Of a DNA stretch of 64,000 bases, positions 11,270 through 19,536 are shown in pieces. The notes under the pieces were generated by a model that was not told the DNA's origin, searched no databases, and worked only from the letters and a program-made list of their open reading frames with translations. Numbering within the stretch: position 1 is the stretch's first letter; every line of letters starts with the position of its first letter. Origin of the DNA: Setoptus koraiensis (Eukaryota > Animalia > Arthropoda); contig CM106585.1 of the NCBI GenBank assembly GCA_048013815.1, forward strand, positions 21,204,001 through 21,268,000. The letters are read 5' to 3'. The position numbers were made by a program, and so were the translations under genes.

Positions 11270-12932
11270 TTATACTCTCATTGTGGACAAATTCTCACTT
11301 ACAGTAAACGTACATCCGGTTGATTGTTTTATTTCATCAACAGAAACACCTTCGGCAATCTCCGTTAGTGTCAGGCCTTGATTGGGCAAAAATCTAAAGA
11401 CCGCCTTCTCTGTTATTATTGTATCGACACAACTTGATCCAGTCAAGGGTAAATCACATTTTTCCACTATTTTAGGTTTTCCATCTTTACTACAGTGTTC
11501 CATAACAACTACTAATCTAGTTCCTGAAACACTTGCAGCAGCCAAATCGGCGGCTCCGCCAAAACCCTTGATTAATTTGCCAGGAACCATCCAGTTAGCC
11601 AGGTCTGCAGATTTCGAAACTTGCATACCACCAAGAATAGTGACATCTAAATGACCGCCTCTTATCATAGCGAAAGATTCATCGCTTGGAAAAAATGAGG
11701 CGCCTGGTAAGACGGATACAGTCTCTTTAGCGGCATTGACAAGATCCGCATCTACATCTTTCTCGTCAGGATATGGTCCCATTGCGAGTAGACCATTTTC
11801 GCTGTGGAATGTAACGTTGACACCAGAGGGAAGAAAATTGGCAGTTAGCACGGGCATGCCGATACCAAGATTGACATTCATACCATCTTTCAACTCAAGA
11901 GCGGCTCTCTTGGCTATTCTTTCTCTTGTTAGTTGTGCCCTAGACTTTGTTGATTCATCCTTGGGGGTCATATTCTGTCTTGTGGTGACTTTTTCAATTC
12001 TCTTCTCGTAATTATGTCCTCTAATAATACGATCCACATAAATAGCAGGAATATGCACTTCATCTGGCTTCAATACACCCACATCGACTATCTCCTCGAC
12101 TTCAGCAATTGTCACTTTTGCGGCCTTGCACATGGTCGCATTGAAATTCCTGGCACTCAATCTAAAAATTAAGTTACCTGCCTTATCGGCTTTGTAAGCT
12201 TTCACAAGAGCAAAATCGGCCTTGATGGCCTCCTCCAAAATATAATGTTTACCATTATGTTCAATAGAGGGTTTGGCTTTACTATGCATGACAACATTAC
12301 CATTATTGTCGTATTTGATTGGGGCACCTCCGTGATGAACCAACGTATTATATCCAGTGGGTGTGTAGAACAGAGGGATGCCAGCACCCCCCGCACGTAT
12401 TTTTTCAGCAAGGGTACCCTGGGGCACAAATTCTAGTTCCAGATCTCCGCGTAGATATTGGGCTTCAAAGAGTTTGTTTTCGCCTACATAAGATGATATC
12501 ATGCGTTTGACTTGATTTTGCCTCAGCAGAAGTCCAACTCCGAAGTCGCTAACTCCCACATTATTGCTTACAACAGTGAGTTTATTGATTTCCTTTTTGG
12601 CTGCAAGTGCCGCTATCAAGTGTTCTGTGATAATGTTATATGGGAATGTTTGCGATGATTGGTTGACATGGTGTGACAACTACGATCTGTGACGTTAGTG
12701 ACGAGTGGGAAGAAAGTACAACGGACTCACCTGGTATTCCGCACAATCCAAATCCGCCTGACAATATGAGAGAGTTTGATTTGATGTCGTGAATGGCATC
12801 CTCTGCCTTGTCGAAAATTTTCGCATTGTTGACAGCCGTTACCCTTAGGCCACGCTGAACTGTAGCGAATAGAAGATGTTTTGCGGAATATCCAGTTGAT
12901 GCAGGCGACAGTAACAACGCCAGCGAATTCAT
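11270..12932 (-). CDS. OXCT1: Mitochondrial succinyl-CoA:3-ketoacid CoA transferase (SCOT), ~518 aa; exons 12932-12731 and 12624-11270
   Basis: GGFGLCGIP|EHLI across a 106-nt GT-AG intron (12730-12625). Motifs SYVGEN, PQGTLAE, NLGIGMP, catalytic SENG and MIRGGHLD. Basic amphipathic presequence. Confidence 0.96.
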
Positions 12933-13155
12933 CTTATTCTCACTACCGTCGTCTATTCAAACAGTGGATGATGCAAGATGTTACAAGAGGTAATATAATA
13001 ATGATAATAGTGATAATAACAGCAACTTGTTTGCTGGTTGGACAGAATTCCAATGGACATTGTTTGCCACATTGTTAGATGCGGTTTACTGTTTATATTC
13101 TGACCATTATTTTCTCGTCTTCCACGCCTACTCTCAGTAGCGCCCTCTTGGATGA
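12778..13155. repeat. Duplicated block A, copy 1 (SCOT first 52 codons and upstream region); paralog at ~16443-16817
   Basis: Manual alignment. 13026-13128 is identical over 103 nt to 16688-16790; the coding part is more diverged. Confidence 0.95.
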
Positions 13156-13924
13156 TTCGAAGAGACTAACATTGTGACCAATATAATAACGTTCACCATG
13201 GCTGTGATGCATTAGATTCTACAAGATTGTTGTTGTTGTTGTTGTTGCTGTTACATAATATCTCATCGCAACAGCAACACACAAATTCATCATTGTTGTT
13301 GGATTAGAGAATGAAAGGGTGCGTGTTACCATGTCCAACTATCATCATTATATAATGGATCATAATGTGTGTTGCATAGCCCAAGCCTATTTGACATTTT
13401 CAATAGAGCACCCAACAAAGCTTCATAGCCCCATTTCGTGAGATCACCTGAAGACCTAAAGGGCGACACATGAAACTCGATATGATCGCATAAAATTGAT
13501 TAAATCTCACCATAGCGTCTATTATTTGATAGGTAAAAGCGAAATTTTCATTTCGTAGCATAAACAGACATATAGACTGGTGATAAGTTCAACTACTAAA
13601 CTCCCACGCGTAGCTCGATAACAAGTTGGCCTCACGACAAGCACCGAGCAACGATTTTGGCCATTGTTGCATGACGCAACTTTAATGGTATGCATGAGAG
13701 AATAATGGTAGCTTTACCATTACAAAGATGTGGGATCGCCATCATTGTTGATACCATCTATTTATAAATACATGTTCATCACATATCTCACATTGGAGCT
13801 TCTTCTCGATACATTTCTATATGCCGTAGACATGGGCTGCAAGGTTAACCCTATCTGCTAAAGCTGCATGGGATCTCCCTGTGGTGTACGCTCTGCCGTG
13901 TGCGCTTGGGGTGGGCATTTGTCA

Positions 13925-13929
13925 GTGTG

Positions 13930-14021
<92 letters not shown>
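13925..14021. repeat. (TG)n microsatellite, ~48 units with two interruptions
   Basis: Read directly from the sequence. Confidence 0.97.
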
Positions 14022-14022
<1 letters not shown>

Positions 14023-14681
14023 CACGAAGAAGTGTTCGCTATGTTTCGTGGTCTCTTTCTCTCTGACTCTTTCCATCCCTTATTGATGGCATCAAACTAG
14101 CACCACCGACACTTACGACACACCATGAGAACATAGTGCTAGGCAAGATATTGGTATAGTTGTTGATGTTATCACATTCACTTACAAGTTGGCCATTATT
14201 TGTTTGCCTATTGGTTGCTGCTGTTGGTTGTTGTCAAGCTACAGATCAGATTGGAATCCGCTATCGTTTAATCATTGCCAGCATCGTTATTCATCGTTGC
14301 TACATTATTAATGTAATTCTAGACCTCAAACAGCTCAAAGTAGAATAATTCACATAATATTACCGTACATGTAATAGTATTAGTGATACTAACAATAATA
14401 ATAAATACAGCAAGAGGCGTAGGCAGTGTATTAATCTCAGGAAAGAGTGAACAGCAACAACAAACACGAACGAACGACAACAACAAATACCTCACTAGCA
14501 ATCGAGTGGCATTGAATTGGGCGAGTTATACAGAGCGAAAAGGAGCCAATATAACAACGACAACAGCGCCTCTGGCAAGAACTAGTAAACAACACACACA
14601 CACACGAACACGAAACAACGCTAATGCTTGCTCACTAGGATTAGATGGATTACCAATTGAGGCATATAATTGAGTGATTTC

Positions 14682-14965
14682 ATATATCATTCAATCAAAA
14701 TATAAATACCAAGCTGTGTATCATCCGATGTATCATTTTGATGATCACCAGTATTGATAGCAGCCAATCACAATTGATGCAAACGTATTGATACTCGTCT
14801 ACATATCTACCTGACCATATTTGGATTCATTTACATATATATATATATAAATAACATAATATCTCTATATACTTACATATATATAATACAAAATTCAGTA
14901 ATTATCATTATTATTTATATAAAAAGAATCGTCATTATCTAGCGTCACCATGTCTGGAGAATCAT
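14682..14965. repeat. Duplicated block B, copy 1 (PIP4K2 upstream region and first codons MSGES); paralog at ~17053-17329
   Basis: Manual alignment shows high identity, including CAGCCAATCACAATTGATGC (CCAAT box), ACTCGTCTACATATCTACCTGACCATA and TCACCATGTCTGGAGAATCA. Confidence 0.93.
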
Positions 14966-16167
14966 CAACAATCACTTCCATCAGTAGGTCAATGTCGACC
15001 AAATGCAAGAAGAAACATTTCAAGCCAAAACATCAAAAATCAAAGCTATTTAGAGCAAATGAGCCATTATTATCTGTCTTTATGTGGGGTGTCAACCATA
15101 CAGTAAGCGAATTAAATCATGTCAACATACCAATCATGCTAATGCCCGACGATTTTAAGGCATTCACTAAGGTGCGAGTGGACAATCATTTATATCAAAA
15201 AGATATAATGCCTTCTCATTTTAAAATCAAAGAATATTGCCCTCTTGTATTTCGTAATTTACGAGAACGCTTCTCAATAGATGACAATGATTATCTCAAA
15301 TCATTAACAAAATTTCAACCAGTGGCTGATGATAGTCGCTCCGGCAGGCCAGCGAAATTCTATTCATCATATGATAAACAACTAATTCTAAAGACATTAT
15401 CAGCTGAAGAAGTTGAAAATATGCATCATCTACTAAAAGAATATCATCCCTACATTGTCGAACGTTTTGGTAAGACATTATTGCCGCAATATCTAGGAAT
15501 GTATAGGTTGACTGTGGAAGGCCAAGAAACTTATATAGTGGTTATGCGTAACATATTTAGCTCGCGTTTACCCATACACAAAAAATATGATCTCAAAGGT
15601 TCAAATTTGGATCGCGAAGCTAGCGAAAAGGAACGTGGCAAAGATTTGCCATGCTTTAAAGATAACGACTTCTTGAAAGATGGTGTAAAATTATATTTAG
15701 ATCTTGATAGCAAAGAGAAATTAATTAGTACACTAGAGGCTGATACAACGTTCCTAGCGCGAGAAAATTTAATGGACTATTCCCTATGTCTAGGTATACA
15801 CGATTGTGAAAAATTCCAACAAGAGCAAGCCGACATAAACTCACCAAAATCTACCAGCTCAAATGAGGACGACGAAGAAGCTGATTCTAGTGGCGGAGGT
15901 GGTGGCGGTATAGCGGGGCCAGACACTCCAAATATGAAAAGTCAAGATGGAGATGATACAATGATCGGCGATGTCGGAACCACTGGTAGTATTGGTGTTA
16001 TGAAATCTAGTGTTGCAAATACAAGCGAAAAGCAGATTTATTTCATGGGGCTAGTAGACGTATTAACGCAGTTTGGATTGAGAAAGAGAATAGTCACTGT
16101 TCATCCAGAGCAATACAGAAAAAGGTTTATGGAGTTCATCGCTAAGGCTATCAATATTTCTGGGTAA
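14950..16167 (+). CDS. PIP4K2: Phosphatidylinositol 5-phosphate 4-kinase (type II PIPK), intronless, 405 aa
   Basis: KKKHF...KLFRANEPLLSVFMWGVNH N-terminus, KEYCPLVFRNLRERF, KYDLKGS, LMDYSL and YFMGLVDVLT...PEQY..RF. Confidence 0.95.
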   Translation: MSGESSTITSISRSMSTKCKKKHFKPKHQKSKLFRANEPLLSVFMWGVNHTVSELNHVNIPIMLMPDDFKAFTKVRVDNHLYQKDIMPSHFKIKEYCPLVFRNLRERFSIDDNDYLKSLTKFQPVADDSRSGRPAKFYSSYDKQLILKTLSAEEVENMHHLLKEYHPYIVERFGKTLLPQYLGMYRLTVEGQETYIVVMRNIFSSRLPIHKKYDLKGSNLDREASEKERGKDLPCFKDNDFLKDGVKLYLDLDSKEKLISTLEADTTFLARENLMDYSLCLGIHDCEKFQQEQADINSPKSTSSNEDDEEADSSGGGGGGIAGPDTPNMKSQDGDDTMIGDVGTTGSIGVMKSSVANTSEKQIYFMGLVDVLTQFGLRKRIVTVHPEQYRKRFMEFIAKAINISG

Positions 16168-16594
16168 TTGTAGAGCGAGCATTTTGAACTGCATCAGTGT
16201 TATGCGTTCCATCGCACAAAGGCTTGTTTTTCGTATGCTTACAATTACAAAACCAATAAATTTTGTCTTCATGAGATTCAAACCTGACCGGCCTATTCTT
16301 GATTTTCATCTTGGCATCTTTGTGTGTCCCATCACAGAATGGTTGATTTCGACTGAAGCCACAAGAGCACCACATATAGACTTTTTTGGCCTTGCATTCA
16401 AACTTAAACGGTCTTTTTGCATAAATGTGACCGTCTCGATCAGATTTGATGTCTTCAACGGCATCCTCTGCCTTGTTGGAGAATATAGAACTTTTGATGG
16501 TCGTTATCCTCAAGCAACGCTGAGCTGTTGTGAATATCAGATGTCTTGCGGGATTTGCGGTCGACGGAGAGAGCAACAACGCCAGTGAATTCAT
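16151..16594 (-). CDS. CISD3: CDGSH iron-sulfur domain protein 3 (MiNT-like) with a SCOT-derived N-terminus, 147 aa
   Basis: Two tandem CDGSH motifs, WCSCGFSRNQPFCDGTH and FCNCKHTKNKPLCDGTH, with no TM helix. Confidence 0.92.
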   Translation of the reverse strand: MNSLALLLSPSTANPARHLIFTTAQRCLRITTIKSSIFSNKAEDAVEDIKSDRDGHIYAKRPFKFECKAKKVYMWCSCGFSRNQPFCDGTHKDAKMKIKNRPVRFESHEDKIYWFCNCKHTKNKPLCDGTHNTDAVQNARSTITQKY

Positions 16595-16817
16595 CTTGTT
16601 CTCAACCCCGTCGCCTATTCAAACAGTGGATGACACAAGATGTAACAAGAGGTAGTATAGTAATAATAATAATGATAGTAACAGCAGCTTGTTTGCTGGT
16701 TGGACAGAATTCCAATGGACATTGTTTGCCACATTGTTAGATGCGGTTTACTGTTTATATTCTGACCATTATTTTCTCGTCTTCCACGCCCACTTTCAGT
16801 AGCGCCCTCTCAATGAT
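16443..16817. repeat. Duplicated block A, copy 2 (CISD3 N-terminus and upstream region)
   Basis: Paralog of 12778-13155. Confidence 0.95.
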
Positions 16818-17052
16818 CACATAATACTACCGTGCCATGTGGAAATCTGCCAATGTCTCTGGCTTTAGTTCAGGGAAAAACCGCTCGAGGTCGCTTTTTG
16901 TACAAGCATTTTCCGTGCGTGAGATTCAGTGAGCATCCGAAAAACAAATCAGCAAGAAAAAAAGAAGAAAAAACGCAACATTTATCGAGACACTTCAGGT
17001 TTTCCGATCCATTTTTTGGCTGATGCGAGCGCCCCTCGCGTCTTTTTCTTTT

Positions 17053-17329
17053 ATACATCATTCAATCAAAATATAAATACTAACCTGTGTATCATCAAAT
17101 GTATCATTTTGATGATCACTAGCGCTGATAGCAGCCAATCACAATTGATGCAAACATATTGATACTCGTCTACATATCTACCTGACCATACTTGGATTCA
17201 TTTACATCTACATATAAAGAACATAATATCTCCATATACTTGCACATATAATACAAAATTTAGTAATTATAATTATCATTTATATAAAAGAATCGTCAGT
17301 ATCTAGCCTCACCATGTCTGGAGAATCAC
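17053..17329. repeat. Duplicated block B, copy 2 (CARS1 upstream region and first codons)
   Basis: Paralog of 14682-14965. Confidence 0.93.
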
Positions 17330-19536
17330 CAATCAGAATATTGAACTCCTTCAGTCGAGCCCTCGAATCTCTCGTTCCGATCCAGAGCAAAAGCATCAGG
17401 TGGTATACTTGTGGGCCAACTGTCTACGCTCCCTCTCATCTCGGCCATGCAAGGTGTTACATGACTTTCGACATTATACGTAGGATATTATTGGATTATT
17501 TTGGTTACCAAGTTCAATATGTTATGAATATCACTGATATAGATGATAAAATAATTAAGACAGCCAGATGTGACTACTTGTACGATCAATACAAGACTAA
17601 AGTTTTGGATAGCGTGGCAAACAATTCCTTTGATCCGACGAAATTCAACAATGACCTCGAAGAGGCTCTATCAGCATATAGACAAAAAACTGAAAAGGAA
17701 AATGACGTTAACAAAAGAAGGATGTACCAAGAAAACGTGGAAAAATTTCTTGCCGACTTGGAGCGTTTTCGAGGGAGCTCACTAAAAGAAGTAAAGGAAC
17801 TACTGCCTGACAGACTGGACACGAGGCATCTCAGGGATATAATCTCTGACCAACTCGACTCTCAATACGGTGAAACTGTCATTGATCACGCTATATTCAA
17901 GAAATTGACATTGGAATATGAGCAGAAATTTCATGAAGATATGAGAAGGCTCAATATTCTTGAGCCAAGTACATTGACTAGAGTAAGCGCACATATTGAA
18001 AATATTGATAAATATATTCAACAAATTGAGTCGAACGGATTCGCCTATAAATCTAACGGTTCGGTATATTTTGACACGAACAAATTTGCCAAAGATCAAA
18101 AACACACCTACGCAAAACTTTCTAATCGAAGTATTGAAGCAGCCAGTAGCCGAAGACAAGATCTAGATGAGGCAGATGGTGAATTATCTAATCTCTCCGA
18201 CAAAAGGTGCCCGGAGGACTTTGCTCTATGGAAAAAGTCAAAACCTGGCGAACCGAGTTGGAAATCTACCACCTATGATGACGGACGCCCTGGTTGGCAC
18301 ATTGAATGTTCCGTCATGGCAAGCCATATCCTCGGAAATCAATTCGATTTGCATTCTGGGGGTTGTGACCTCAAGTTTCCTCATCATGATAACGAGATTG
18401 CCCAAGCTGAAGCAAAAATAAATACCGGACACAATTGGGTCAACTATTTTATCCACTCTGGTCACCTTCATATTGCAGGATGCAAGATGTCAAAATCTCT
18501 AAAAAACTTCGTAACAATAGCTGAAGCTTTGGAGAAATACTCCGCATTACAGTTGAGGCTTCTTTTTCTGAGTCATAACTGGACGGAAACTTTAGACTAT
18601 TCTGACGACACTATGAAGCGTGCACTGAGTATAGAAAAACGAGTGAATGATTTCTTTCTCATAGTAAAGGATCGATTAAGAGATCCCCATGCTGGAGGGG
18701 ACGCAGCAAACCCTTCCATAGAAACTATTTTCGTTGAGTGGACACAGAGTGACATAGAAATGAATCAAGAATTTTTAAACACAACACAATTGATAGATGA
18801 GTCGTTACGTGATAATTTCAATACCAAGCGGGCTGTTGATCTCACGCTGGAGCTCATCGCAAAAGTCTACAAGAAAGAGTCGTGCAACTTGATTCTATTG
18901 AGAGATATAGCCGCATTCATTCATAAATTATTTAGAATATTCGGTGCAAATTTTAATAGTTTTCAACCAAGGACGCACATTGTGGAAATTCCTGATCAGG
19001 CCCCTCAAGAGAATTTTGAAAATGGTCAATCCACTGAAGTCCTTTATAGTTATATGGATACCTTGGCCAGTTTTCGATCCAAAGTTAGAGAGGTGGCTAA
19101 GAAAGGACAGACTCCGTCTGATTTTGTCGACATTCTCAAACTATGTGATGAACTTCGCGACACGATCTTGCCGGAGATGGGTGTTCGTCTGCAGGATAAA
19201 GAAGATGTGAAAGGTAAACCCTATGTGCTCGAACTGGTTGATAAAGAAACCATGATGAGAGAGAAAGCCTTGGCAGAAAAGTTGAAGTATGAAAAAATGA
19301 ATGAAAAATTGAAGCAACTAGAATTACAAAAACAAAAAGATGACCAAAAGAAGATACCACCAAGTGAAATGTTCAAAGATCAAAAGGACAGATTCTCTCA
19401 ATTCGACGCTGAAGGTTTACCTACCCACGATGCCGAGGGTCAAGTATTGCCCAAGTCCCAAGTTAGCAAGCTGAAAAGGTTACAGAAGGACCAAGAGAAA
19501 AAGTACAAGAAGTACTTGGAGTCTATCAAGCAATAA
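17314..19536 (+). CDS. CARS1: Cytosolic cysteinyl-tRNA synthetase, intronless, 740 aa
   Basis: WYTCGPTVY, HIGH-type HLGH, ITDIDDKII, DFALWK, GRPGWHIECS, DLKFPHHDNE and KMSKSLKNF, with a eukaryotic C-terminal extension. Confidence 0.98.
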   Translation: MSGESPIRILNSFSRALESLVPIQSKSIRWYTCGPTVYAPSHLGHARCYMTFDIIRRILLDYFGYQVQYVMNITDIDDKIIKTARCDYLYDQYKTKVLDSVANNSFDPTKFNNDLEEALSAYRQKTEKENDVNKRRMYQENVEKFLADLERFRGSSLKEVKELLPDRLDTRHLRDIISDQLDSQYGETVIDHAIFKKLTLEYEQKFHEDMRRLNILEPSTLTRVSAHIENIDKYIQQIESNGFAYKSNGSVYFDTNKFAKDQKHTYAKLSNRSIEAASSRRQDLDEADGELSNLSDKRCPEDFALWKKSKPGEPSWKSTTYDDGRPGWHIECSVMASHILGNQFDLHSGGCDLKFPHHDNEIAQAEAKINTGHNWVNYFIHSGHLHIAGCKMSKSLKNFVTIAEALEKYSALQLRLLFLSHNWTETLDYSDDTMKRALSIEKRVNDFFLIVKDRLRDPHAGGDAANPSIETIFVEWTQSDIEMNQEFLNTTQLIDESLRDNFNTKRAVDLTLELIAKVYKKESCNLILLRDIAAFIHKLFRIFGANFNSFQPRTHIVEIPDQAPQENFENGQSTEVLYSYMDTLASFRSKVREVAKKGQTPSDFVDILKLCDELRDTILPEMGVRLQDKEDVKGKPYVLELVDKETMMREKALAEKLKYEKMNEKLKQLELQKQKDDQKKIPPSEMFKDQKDRFSQFDAEGLPTHDAEGQVLPKSQVSKLKRLQKDQEKKYKKYLESIKQ

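Follow-up and report, generated by a model that had tools for sequence, protein, structure and literature searches.

The genome of the mite Setoptus koraiensis contains, within a stretch of 64,000 nucleotides (GenBank assembly GCA_048013815.1, contig CM106585.1, positions 21,204,001 to 21,268,000, forward strand; hereafter the window, with positions counted from its first letter), four genes that open reading frames (ORFs) and RNA contigs place in the order SCOT(-), PIP4K2(+), CISD3(-) and CARS1(+). We found that the DNA in front of SCOT, together with the start of its coding sequence (CDS), is repeated at the 5' end of CISD3, and that the corresponding part of CARS1 is repeated at the 5' end of PIP4K2. 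The account that we favour, and consider probable, is that two separate 5' modules were copied onto adjacent unrelated genes, one from SCOT to CISD3 and one from CARS1 to PIP4K2, and that gene conversion later acted on the SCOT-derived pair. Each module would consist of a core promoter, a 5' untranslated region (5'UTR), a start codon and the first codons, copied as DNA. On this account the outer genes are the donors and the inner, tail-to-tail pair the recipients, with the two transfers running in opposite directions, and SCOT and CARS1 retained their own control regions.

Two pairs of repeated blocks

Comparison of the window with itself by blastn gave two pairs of matching segments. Block A1 (12778-13148, minus strand) matched block A2 (16443-16810, minus strand) with 85.7% identity over 371 columns (E 4e-111), and block B1 (14678-14968, plus strand) matched block B2 (17049-17332, plus strand) with 89.3% identity over 291 columns (E 3e-102). 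Repeat finding recovered the same pairs, with A and B both forming collinear direct repeats, and no third copy of either block was found by blastn within the window. The paralogy spans 216 nucleotides (nt) of upstream DNA and 52 codons in block A, and 272 nt of upstream DNA and 6-7 codons in block B. At the upstream end of block A it runs on, in decayed form, for ~35 bp past 13148 and 16810.

An earlier reading of this DNA, made from its letters alone (the sequence-only reading), had described both matches as collinear and equally oriented, which the self-comparison confirmed. It had also let the shared segments extend beyond the start codons of all four genes, and the minus-strand ORFs do begin with the same 10 protein letters and the plus-strand ORFs both with MSGES. 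The DNA between the blocks differs as that reading had said, with 1529 bp including a (TG)n tract between A1 and B1 (middle 1) versus 238 bp between A2 and B2 (middle 2).

Block A contains SCOT-type codons, a 5'UTR and a putative core promoter. A core of 103 nt is identical in the two copies (13026-13128 in A1 and 16688-16790 in A2, minus strand) and carries TATAAA at 13093-13098, with the corresponding TATA-like box at 16755-16760, as well as a CCAAT/ATTGG motif. The distal end is formed by a conserved promoter motif, AGAGGGCGCTA..GGGCGTGG, located on the minus strand at 13122-13148 in A1 and, by motif search, at 16784-16810 in A2; it is kept in the same position in two contigs from relatives (L003 and L001, described below). 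A common promoter motif was considered as an explanation for this element and rejected, as only the A1 and A2 copies were found in the 64 kb with 1 mismatch allowed. In block B, the B1 copy has a CCAAT box at 14764-14768, a conserved 20-mer at 14778-14797, a 5'UTR, the ATG at 14950 and 6-7 codons, and the B2 copy has a CCAAT box at 17135-17139, the conserved 20-mer at 17149-17168, a 5'UTR, the ATG at 17314 and 6 codons.

Origin of block A and the N-terminus of CISD3

The nearest relative was a species (species R) represented by Logan run SRR33593474, in which CARS1 and SCOT are 87% and 94% identical to the genes of the window, with ~61% at fourfold degenerate sites. Its SCOT contig, L003, is orthologous to block A1 (E 9e-19). 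In the window, the coding part of SCOT exon 1 (12731-12932, minus strand, with the ATG at 12932) encodes a presequence and, from residue 41, the start of the Pfam CoA_trans domain, with residues 41-67 aligning to positions 2-29 of the profile. All of the ~40 SCOT orthologs compared, from close relatives to ticks and spiders, contain A-x-[ED]-A-[IV]-x-D-[IV]-K-S followed by GGFGLCGIP.

The CISD3 protein of the window contains KAEDAVEDIKS directly before its own DGHIYAKRPFKF. This stretch was not present in the CISD3 proteins of the other arthropods compared, and its DNA is identical to that of SCOT at 27/30 positions. A native CISD3 origin of the SCOT-like segment, for which there is a weak likeness to the insect pattern I-P-x-N-x-x-E-D, was rejected on the basis of this DNA identity. 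Judged by the orthologs on both sides, block A is native to SCOT and was copied to CISD3.

The resulting CISD3 is a chimera that starts with the SCOT presequence, followed by ~11 residues from the beginning of the CoA-transferase domain (residues 41-51, encoded at ~16443-16474). The Met derived from block A is the only Met ahead of the CDGSH domains, and the frame is open across the junction. Residues 1-35 contain 4 Arg/Lys and no Asp or Glu, 54% of them are Ser, Thr, Ala or Leu, and the first acidic residue is residue 43. This composition matches that of a presequence, which has 20-40 residues, is non-acidic and is rich in Arg/Lys and hydroxyl residues. The borrowed N-terminus resembles a matrix-targeting peptide, and CISD3 would be imported into mitochondria through it. 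In the account that we favour, the copy of block A would have given CISD3 a promoter, a leader, its only usable ATG, a presequence and ~11 residues of the SCOT fold that serve as a linker.

CISD3, like PIP4K2 (see below), combines the features of a 5' partial duplication: the paralogy extends over upstream DNA, UTR, ATG and codons, the frame is open, and the chimera is expressed. The segment is present in donor orthologs and missing from those of the recipient, with the caveat that CISD3 of the nearest relative already has a decayed 5' end of the A type.

Divergence within block A

The similarity between A1 and A2 was measured for the separate parts of the block. The coding part was 73.5% identical, with differences at 8/16 fourfold degenerate sites, and the proximal 5'UTR was 85% identical (14/93 positions different). 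The core (13026-13128) was 100% identical (0/103 different), and the distal flank past 13148 showed weak similarity. The noncoding DNA of the block was 88% identical overall. By Fisher's test the fourfold sites differed from the UTR (p = 0.004), as did the core (p = 2e-5). In the comparison of A1 with SCOT of species R (L003), identity was 81.5% in coding and 61% in noncoding DNA. The paralogs within one species (88-100%) are therefore more alike than the orthologs of two species (61%), and this, together with the mosaic divergence, is the pattern of interlocus gene conversion. Constraint is a poor account of the perfect core, because the noncoding DNA of the ortholog is only 61% alike.

A contig from a relative that includes CISD3 (L001) was informative about the age of the paralogy. 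Its DNA upstream of CISD3 matched A1 at 13067-13184 (E 4e-8), which extends beyond the present A2 boundary, and carried the ~30-nt distal motif. When its CISD3 presequence was compared with SCOT presequences, the scores were 39-44, whereas shuffled sequences gave 20-21 ± 4. The 5' end of CISD3 in L001 is of the A type but decayed, both upstream and in the presequence. From these matches we conclude that the A paralogy predates the split from the nearest sequenced relative. We also conclude that A1 and A2 were refreshed at least twice in the lineage of the window, once by a tract that runs through the DIKS codons and most recently in the core. Repeated gene conversion of short tracts would be the simplest mechanism for this mosaic, and in the favoured account block A would have been homogenised again and again, the core promoter and 5'UTR being the centre of the converted tracts.

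A 38-nt stretch at the end of SCOT exon 1 (12775-12815), with the codons for 13 residues, was identical to L003 with no silent change, and elsewhere ~39% of fourfold sites differ. This identity, at the edge of block A, points to constraint at the nucleotide level or to a conversion hotspot.

Origin of block B and the start of PIP4K2

The CARS1 contig of species R, L005, retains the XPO7-like gene downstream, and its CDS starts with ATGTCT. The 226 bp upstream of CARS1 in this contig matched only B2 and B1 across the whole window, with 90% identity over 31 nt to B2 at 17138-17168 (E 4e-5) and a match to B1 with E 1e-4.

PIP4K2 was compared in two contigs of more distant relatives, L007 and L008, from Joint Genome Institute (JGI) metagenomes, in which the gene is intronless and 76-77% identical. 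The ATG of both aligns to an ATC in the window (14971-14973, plus strand), 2-3 nt past the end of B1. No similarity to block B was found upstream of PIP4K2 in either contig. Since the ancestral start lies at this ATC and no B is found upstream of it in L007 and L008, block B replaced everything upstream of PIP4K2 and added 7 codons. The first ATG of PIP4K2 is derived from block B, and the frame is open across the junction. On the evidence of these relatives, block B is native to CARS1 and was copied to PIP4K2. The PIP4K2 CDS in the window (14950-16167, plus strand, 405 aa; Pfam PIP5K, E 7e-65) is headed by the B copy, with its old start now an ATC and 7 codons gained. In a further relative, distant and GC-rich (L006, P0315), PIP4K2 starts with MSG, which is uninformative on block B.

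Neither L007 nor L008 had SCOT, CISD3 or CARS1 within 6 kb of PIP4K2. In L008 (2720-3631) the gene stands head-to-head with a sirtuin-like gene, and in L007 (309-1967) a transposase-like ORF lies upstream; these mites have a strongly reshuffled gene order. Comparison of the start of CARS1 between the window (17314-17360) and L005 (227-342) showed that L005 has a short intron following codon 13. The window lacks it, through either a recent loss here or a gain there.

Assembly, copy number and transcription

To check the junctions, we used Logan contigs from three DNA-like runs, which were assembled independently of the window. They led from the body of SCOT into A1 (12200-12946/12997), from B1 through PIP4K2 and CISD3 into A2 (14861-16661), and from B2 into CARS1 (17161-17900). 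Others connected the unique middle with A1 and with B1. The chimeric assembly that the sequence-only reading had named as a danger is thus not the source of the pattern. A unitig consisting of exactly the identical core (16688-16790, 103 nt) had a depth of 144.7, versus 74-101 in the flanking unique contigs, and the block-specific contigs had ~1x (single-copy) depth. The core depth of ~2x fits two copies, and blocks A and B are not a dispersed repeat, which was the other danger named there.

Some contigs joined 13017 to 16657. A deletion allele was considered and rejected, as the joints have sides of 21 nt only and lie in an AT-rich microsatellite common to both copies; we read them as cross-overs in the assembly graph. 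In run X3, the intergenic and promoter regions (12964-14682 and 16593-17165) had 4-8x the depth of the gene bodies, whereas X1 and X2 were flat. X3 could come from a library enriched for open chromatin or in some other way, in which case both promoter regions and middle 1 would be accessible.

A further run, X7, behaves as RNA in that it skips the SCOT intron. Its contigs covered SCOT exon 1 and leader (12731-12997), PIP4K2 and CISD3, entering B1 at one end and A2 at the other (14931-16661), the CISD3 leader into A2 (16632-16717), and the CARS1 leader and start (17265-17432). CISD3 is transcribed through A2, and the chimeric message is made. The CISD3 contig ends 30 nt into the shared core, as a k=31 graph does at repeats, so that the true start of CISD3 lies at or somewhat beyond 16717. 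The TATAAA at 16755-16760 would place it near 16730. Upstream of the RNA ends lie ~80-90 nt of block A and ~200 nt or more of block B. Since the RNA contigs begin far from the block edges, downstream of a TATA-like box, the blocks appear to hold promoter DNA and not leaders alone.

Gene structures and other features of the locus

SCOT (succinyl-CoA:3-ketoacid CoA transferase) was identified by the Pfam CoA_trans domain and by homologs of that name. Its exon 2, including the stop codon, lies at 11270-12627 on the minus strand (CoA_trans E 1.5e-104) and is separated from exon 1 by an intron of 103 nt (12628-12730). The X7 contigs on both sides of this intron run over 12271-12627 and 12731-12997, the loose ends of each match the exon of the other, and the intron is likewise found in the relative (L003). 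The CISD3 CDS (16151-16594, minus strand, 147 aa) was identified by Pfam zf-CDGSH and by homologs named CISD3. The CARS1 CDS (17314-19536, plus strand, 740 aa) is intronless here, and its homologs are named cytoplasmic cysteine--tRNA ligase. According to the ORF list, nearly all genes of the window are intronless, and the genome is compact and intron-poor. For CISD3, CARS1 and PIP4K2 of the window, no database record with exactly the same protein was found. The nearest named homologs are from chelicerates and insects, and traces of the window sequence were seen in phyllosphere and air metagenomes.

The CDSs of PIP4K2 and CISD3 overlap tail-to-tail by 17 nt (16151-16167), and the overlap is kept in L001 (685-701). 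With this conserved overlap, the two mRNAs are antisense to each other at their 3' ends.

Middle 1 (13149-14677) is a single-copy spacer that had baseline depth in X1 and X2 and no X7 RNA. It contains a long (TG)n tract at ~13915-14030 and neighbouring (CAA)n-like tracts, and the contigs of all runs break there. Most of middle 2 is a copy of a dispersed repeat (16862-17045, ~185 bp), which had a depth of 20-40x baseline in three runs, with variant contigs and diverging flanks. The repeat has an A-rich centre and, at its end, a GC hairpin followed by a T-run (17022-17052). Other genomic copies are flanked by the inverted 10-mers AATAGCTTGA / TCAAGCTATT, and blastn found no second full copy within the window. 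An Rfam scan of 12000-18000 gave nothing credible, with no known RNA matching the core or the middle repeat, and the predicted fold of the repeat was no better than that of shuffled sequences (z = +1.5).

Alternative explanations

In the account that we favour, the two modules would have been copied by non-homologous partial duplication or template switching, followed by conversion, and each donor and its recipient would be co-regulated. Several points weigh against it. Part of the perfect core might reflect strong selection, though the orthologs do not conserve it. L001 comes from a data set other than that of L003 and L005, and was assigned by silent-site divergence only, which makes it the same species or one equally distant. 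The capture of block B by PIP4K2 was judged only from the distant L007 and L008, and an old capture is not separable from a recent one on that basis. The transcription starts were taken from the ends of assembled RNA contigs. Finally, two independent captures in adjacent genes are less parsimonious than one founding event.

Such a founding event is the alternative that survives best, although we think it unlikely. A PIP4K2-CISD3 pair would have been inserted into an ancestral spacer between SCOT and CARS1 in head-to-head orientation, with duplication of the target (A+B, ~0.5 kb) on both sides. Both chimeras would have arisen at once. Later on, 1.5 kb would have been inserted on the left side and the dispersed repeat on the other, and gene conversion would have acted on the result. 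The donors are those that such an insertion predicts, with the outer genes native and the inner genes recipients, and once the repeat at 16862-17045 is excised, A2 with its decayed flank directly adjoins B2. The substitution level in the 5'UTR was 15% for A versus 8.5% for B, with no significant difference (p = 0.075), and the cluster is derived, PIP4K2, SCOT and CARS1 being unlinked in more distant relatives. However, SCOT was not head-to-head with CARS1 in any outgroup contig: it faces a coiled-coil gene in L004 and lies in tandem after a kinase gene in L028, and in L030 nothing SCOT- or CISD3-like was found within 10 kb upstream of CARS1. These contigs are too distant and too rearranged to refute the insertion. 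It would also require two in-frame junctions at once, and blastn found no trace of B next to A1 and no trace of A next to B1.

The sequence-only reading had instead proposed that one whole bidirectional cassette from one donor locus was duplicated or converted and overwrote the promoters, UTRs and N-termini of both genes at the other locus, CARS1 included. The blocks do share order and orientation, and their overall identity is similar, but order and orientation are forced by the orientations of the genes. The donors lie at different loci, block A being native to SCOT at the first locus and block B to CARS1 at the second, which does not fit a contiguous unit from one donor. At the first locus the blocks are 1.5 kb apart and make two promoters, not a bidirectional unit. 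A single event is further contradicted by the mosaic of ages in block A and by the A-type CISD3 that is already present in the sister species. We therefore regard this proposal as very improbable. Parts of it did hold: blocks are shared by two unrelated gene pairs, CISD3 is a chimera, and SCOT, which had been named as the likely donor of block A, is supported in that role by the motif universal to SCOT and the CoA_trans start in CISD3. The part that failed was the replacement of the promoter of the essential gene CARS1, since the DNA upstream of CARS1 in L005 is B-like and CARS1 is thus native, a donor and not a recipient.

Capture of leaders through RNA seems just as improbable. In this case a chimeric cDNA, made by template switching of reverse transcriptase, would have recombined into the genome, the blocks would be leaders only, and the promoters would be native; this is also the process to which the massive loss of introns in these mites has been attributed. 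It would fit the intron-poor genome, the lack in CARS1 of an intron that the relative keeps, and the fact that both blocks stop just past the start codon region. However, the RNA contigs stop ~90 nt short of the block edge in A2 and >200 nt short of it in B2, and the DNA upstream of the RNA end includes a TATA-like box as well as the conserved distal motif.

An origin of the blocks from a dispersed repeat or transposable element, or from an artefact of assembly, has least to recommend it and is hardly credible. Only the middle segment (16862-17045) is truly high-copy, whereas the core unitig is at ~2x and contigs specific to one block have the depth of a single copy. Three runs and the RNA support every junction, no further copies occur in the window, and the coding starts within the blocks are functional and have orthologs in relatives.

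Comparison with known systems

Chimeric genes that arise by partial duplication without regard to gene boundaries are known from Drosophila, for example jingwei, and Rogers and Hartl have reportedly carried out surveys of such genes. As in those genes, the 5' segment of one gene (promoter, UTR and first codons) was copied and joined in frame to an unrelated gene next to it, so that the neighbour would inherit the regulation of the donor. Unlike in Drosophila, no extra gene was made here: the recipient is an old housekeeping gene with no second copy, in which the captured segment took the place of the original 5' end. There are also two adjacent captures with opposite donor directions and with modules that are still homogenised.

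Mitochondrial presequences gained from other nuclear genes are known from plants, where rps11 genes carry the presequences of atp2 and coxVb, and Adams and Palmer are said to have reviewed cases of presequence acquisition. Here too, the targeting peptide of a matrix protein appears to be copied from the 5' end of a gene for another mitochondrial protein. The animal recipient, however, needed a presequence before the copying and had one, in line with the mitochondrial annotation of its orthologs, no transfer from an organelle is involved, and the copy includes a promoter and a piece of the mature domain of the donor.

The within-species identity of 88-100% against 61% for orthologs, and the mosaic with a perfect tract, are as expected of ectopic gene conversion, but the tract in this case is the promoter and leader of two non-homologous genes 3.7 kb apart. 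CISD3 and CARS1 also resemble genes with a bidirectional promoter, as their ATGs stand 719 bp apart in head-to-head arrangement and a CCAAT box occurs in each block. In contrast to such promoters, the region is made up of two unidirectional modules of independent origin and an inserted repeat, and at the other locus the two modules are 1.5 kb apart. What differs in the present case is the combination of sole-copy housekeeping genes as recipients, interlocked captures in opposite directions, and concerted evolution of a promoter across non-homologous genes. In the published descriptions of eriophyoid genomes that we examined, there was no mention of promoter duplication.

Implications

The locus suggests that old single-copy housekeeping genes can exchange their whole 5' control region and N-terminus for those of a neighbour. 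One of the recipients is a mitochondrial iron-sulfur protein, and the replacement includes its predicted targeting peptide. Promoters copied in this way can afterwards evolve together through gene conversion. The direction of both transfers could be read from cross-species data, which is rarely possible for promoter duplications.

We tentatively raise a wider possibility, although the odds are against it: 5' modules might be exchangeable cassettes in gall mites, copied repeatedly onto unrelated neighbouring genes by a systematic process of promoter-centred break repair or template switching and kept alike by conversion. If this were true, a sizeable share of the housekeeping genes in these streamlined genomes would be under borrowed control regions, and the present locus would be a reciprocal instance involving two genes, with a multi-step history that can be dated. 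If similar cases hold genome-wide, the capture of promoters could be a common way in which regulation is rewired in animal genomes of extreme compactness.

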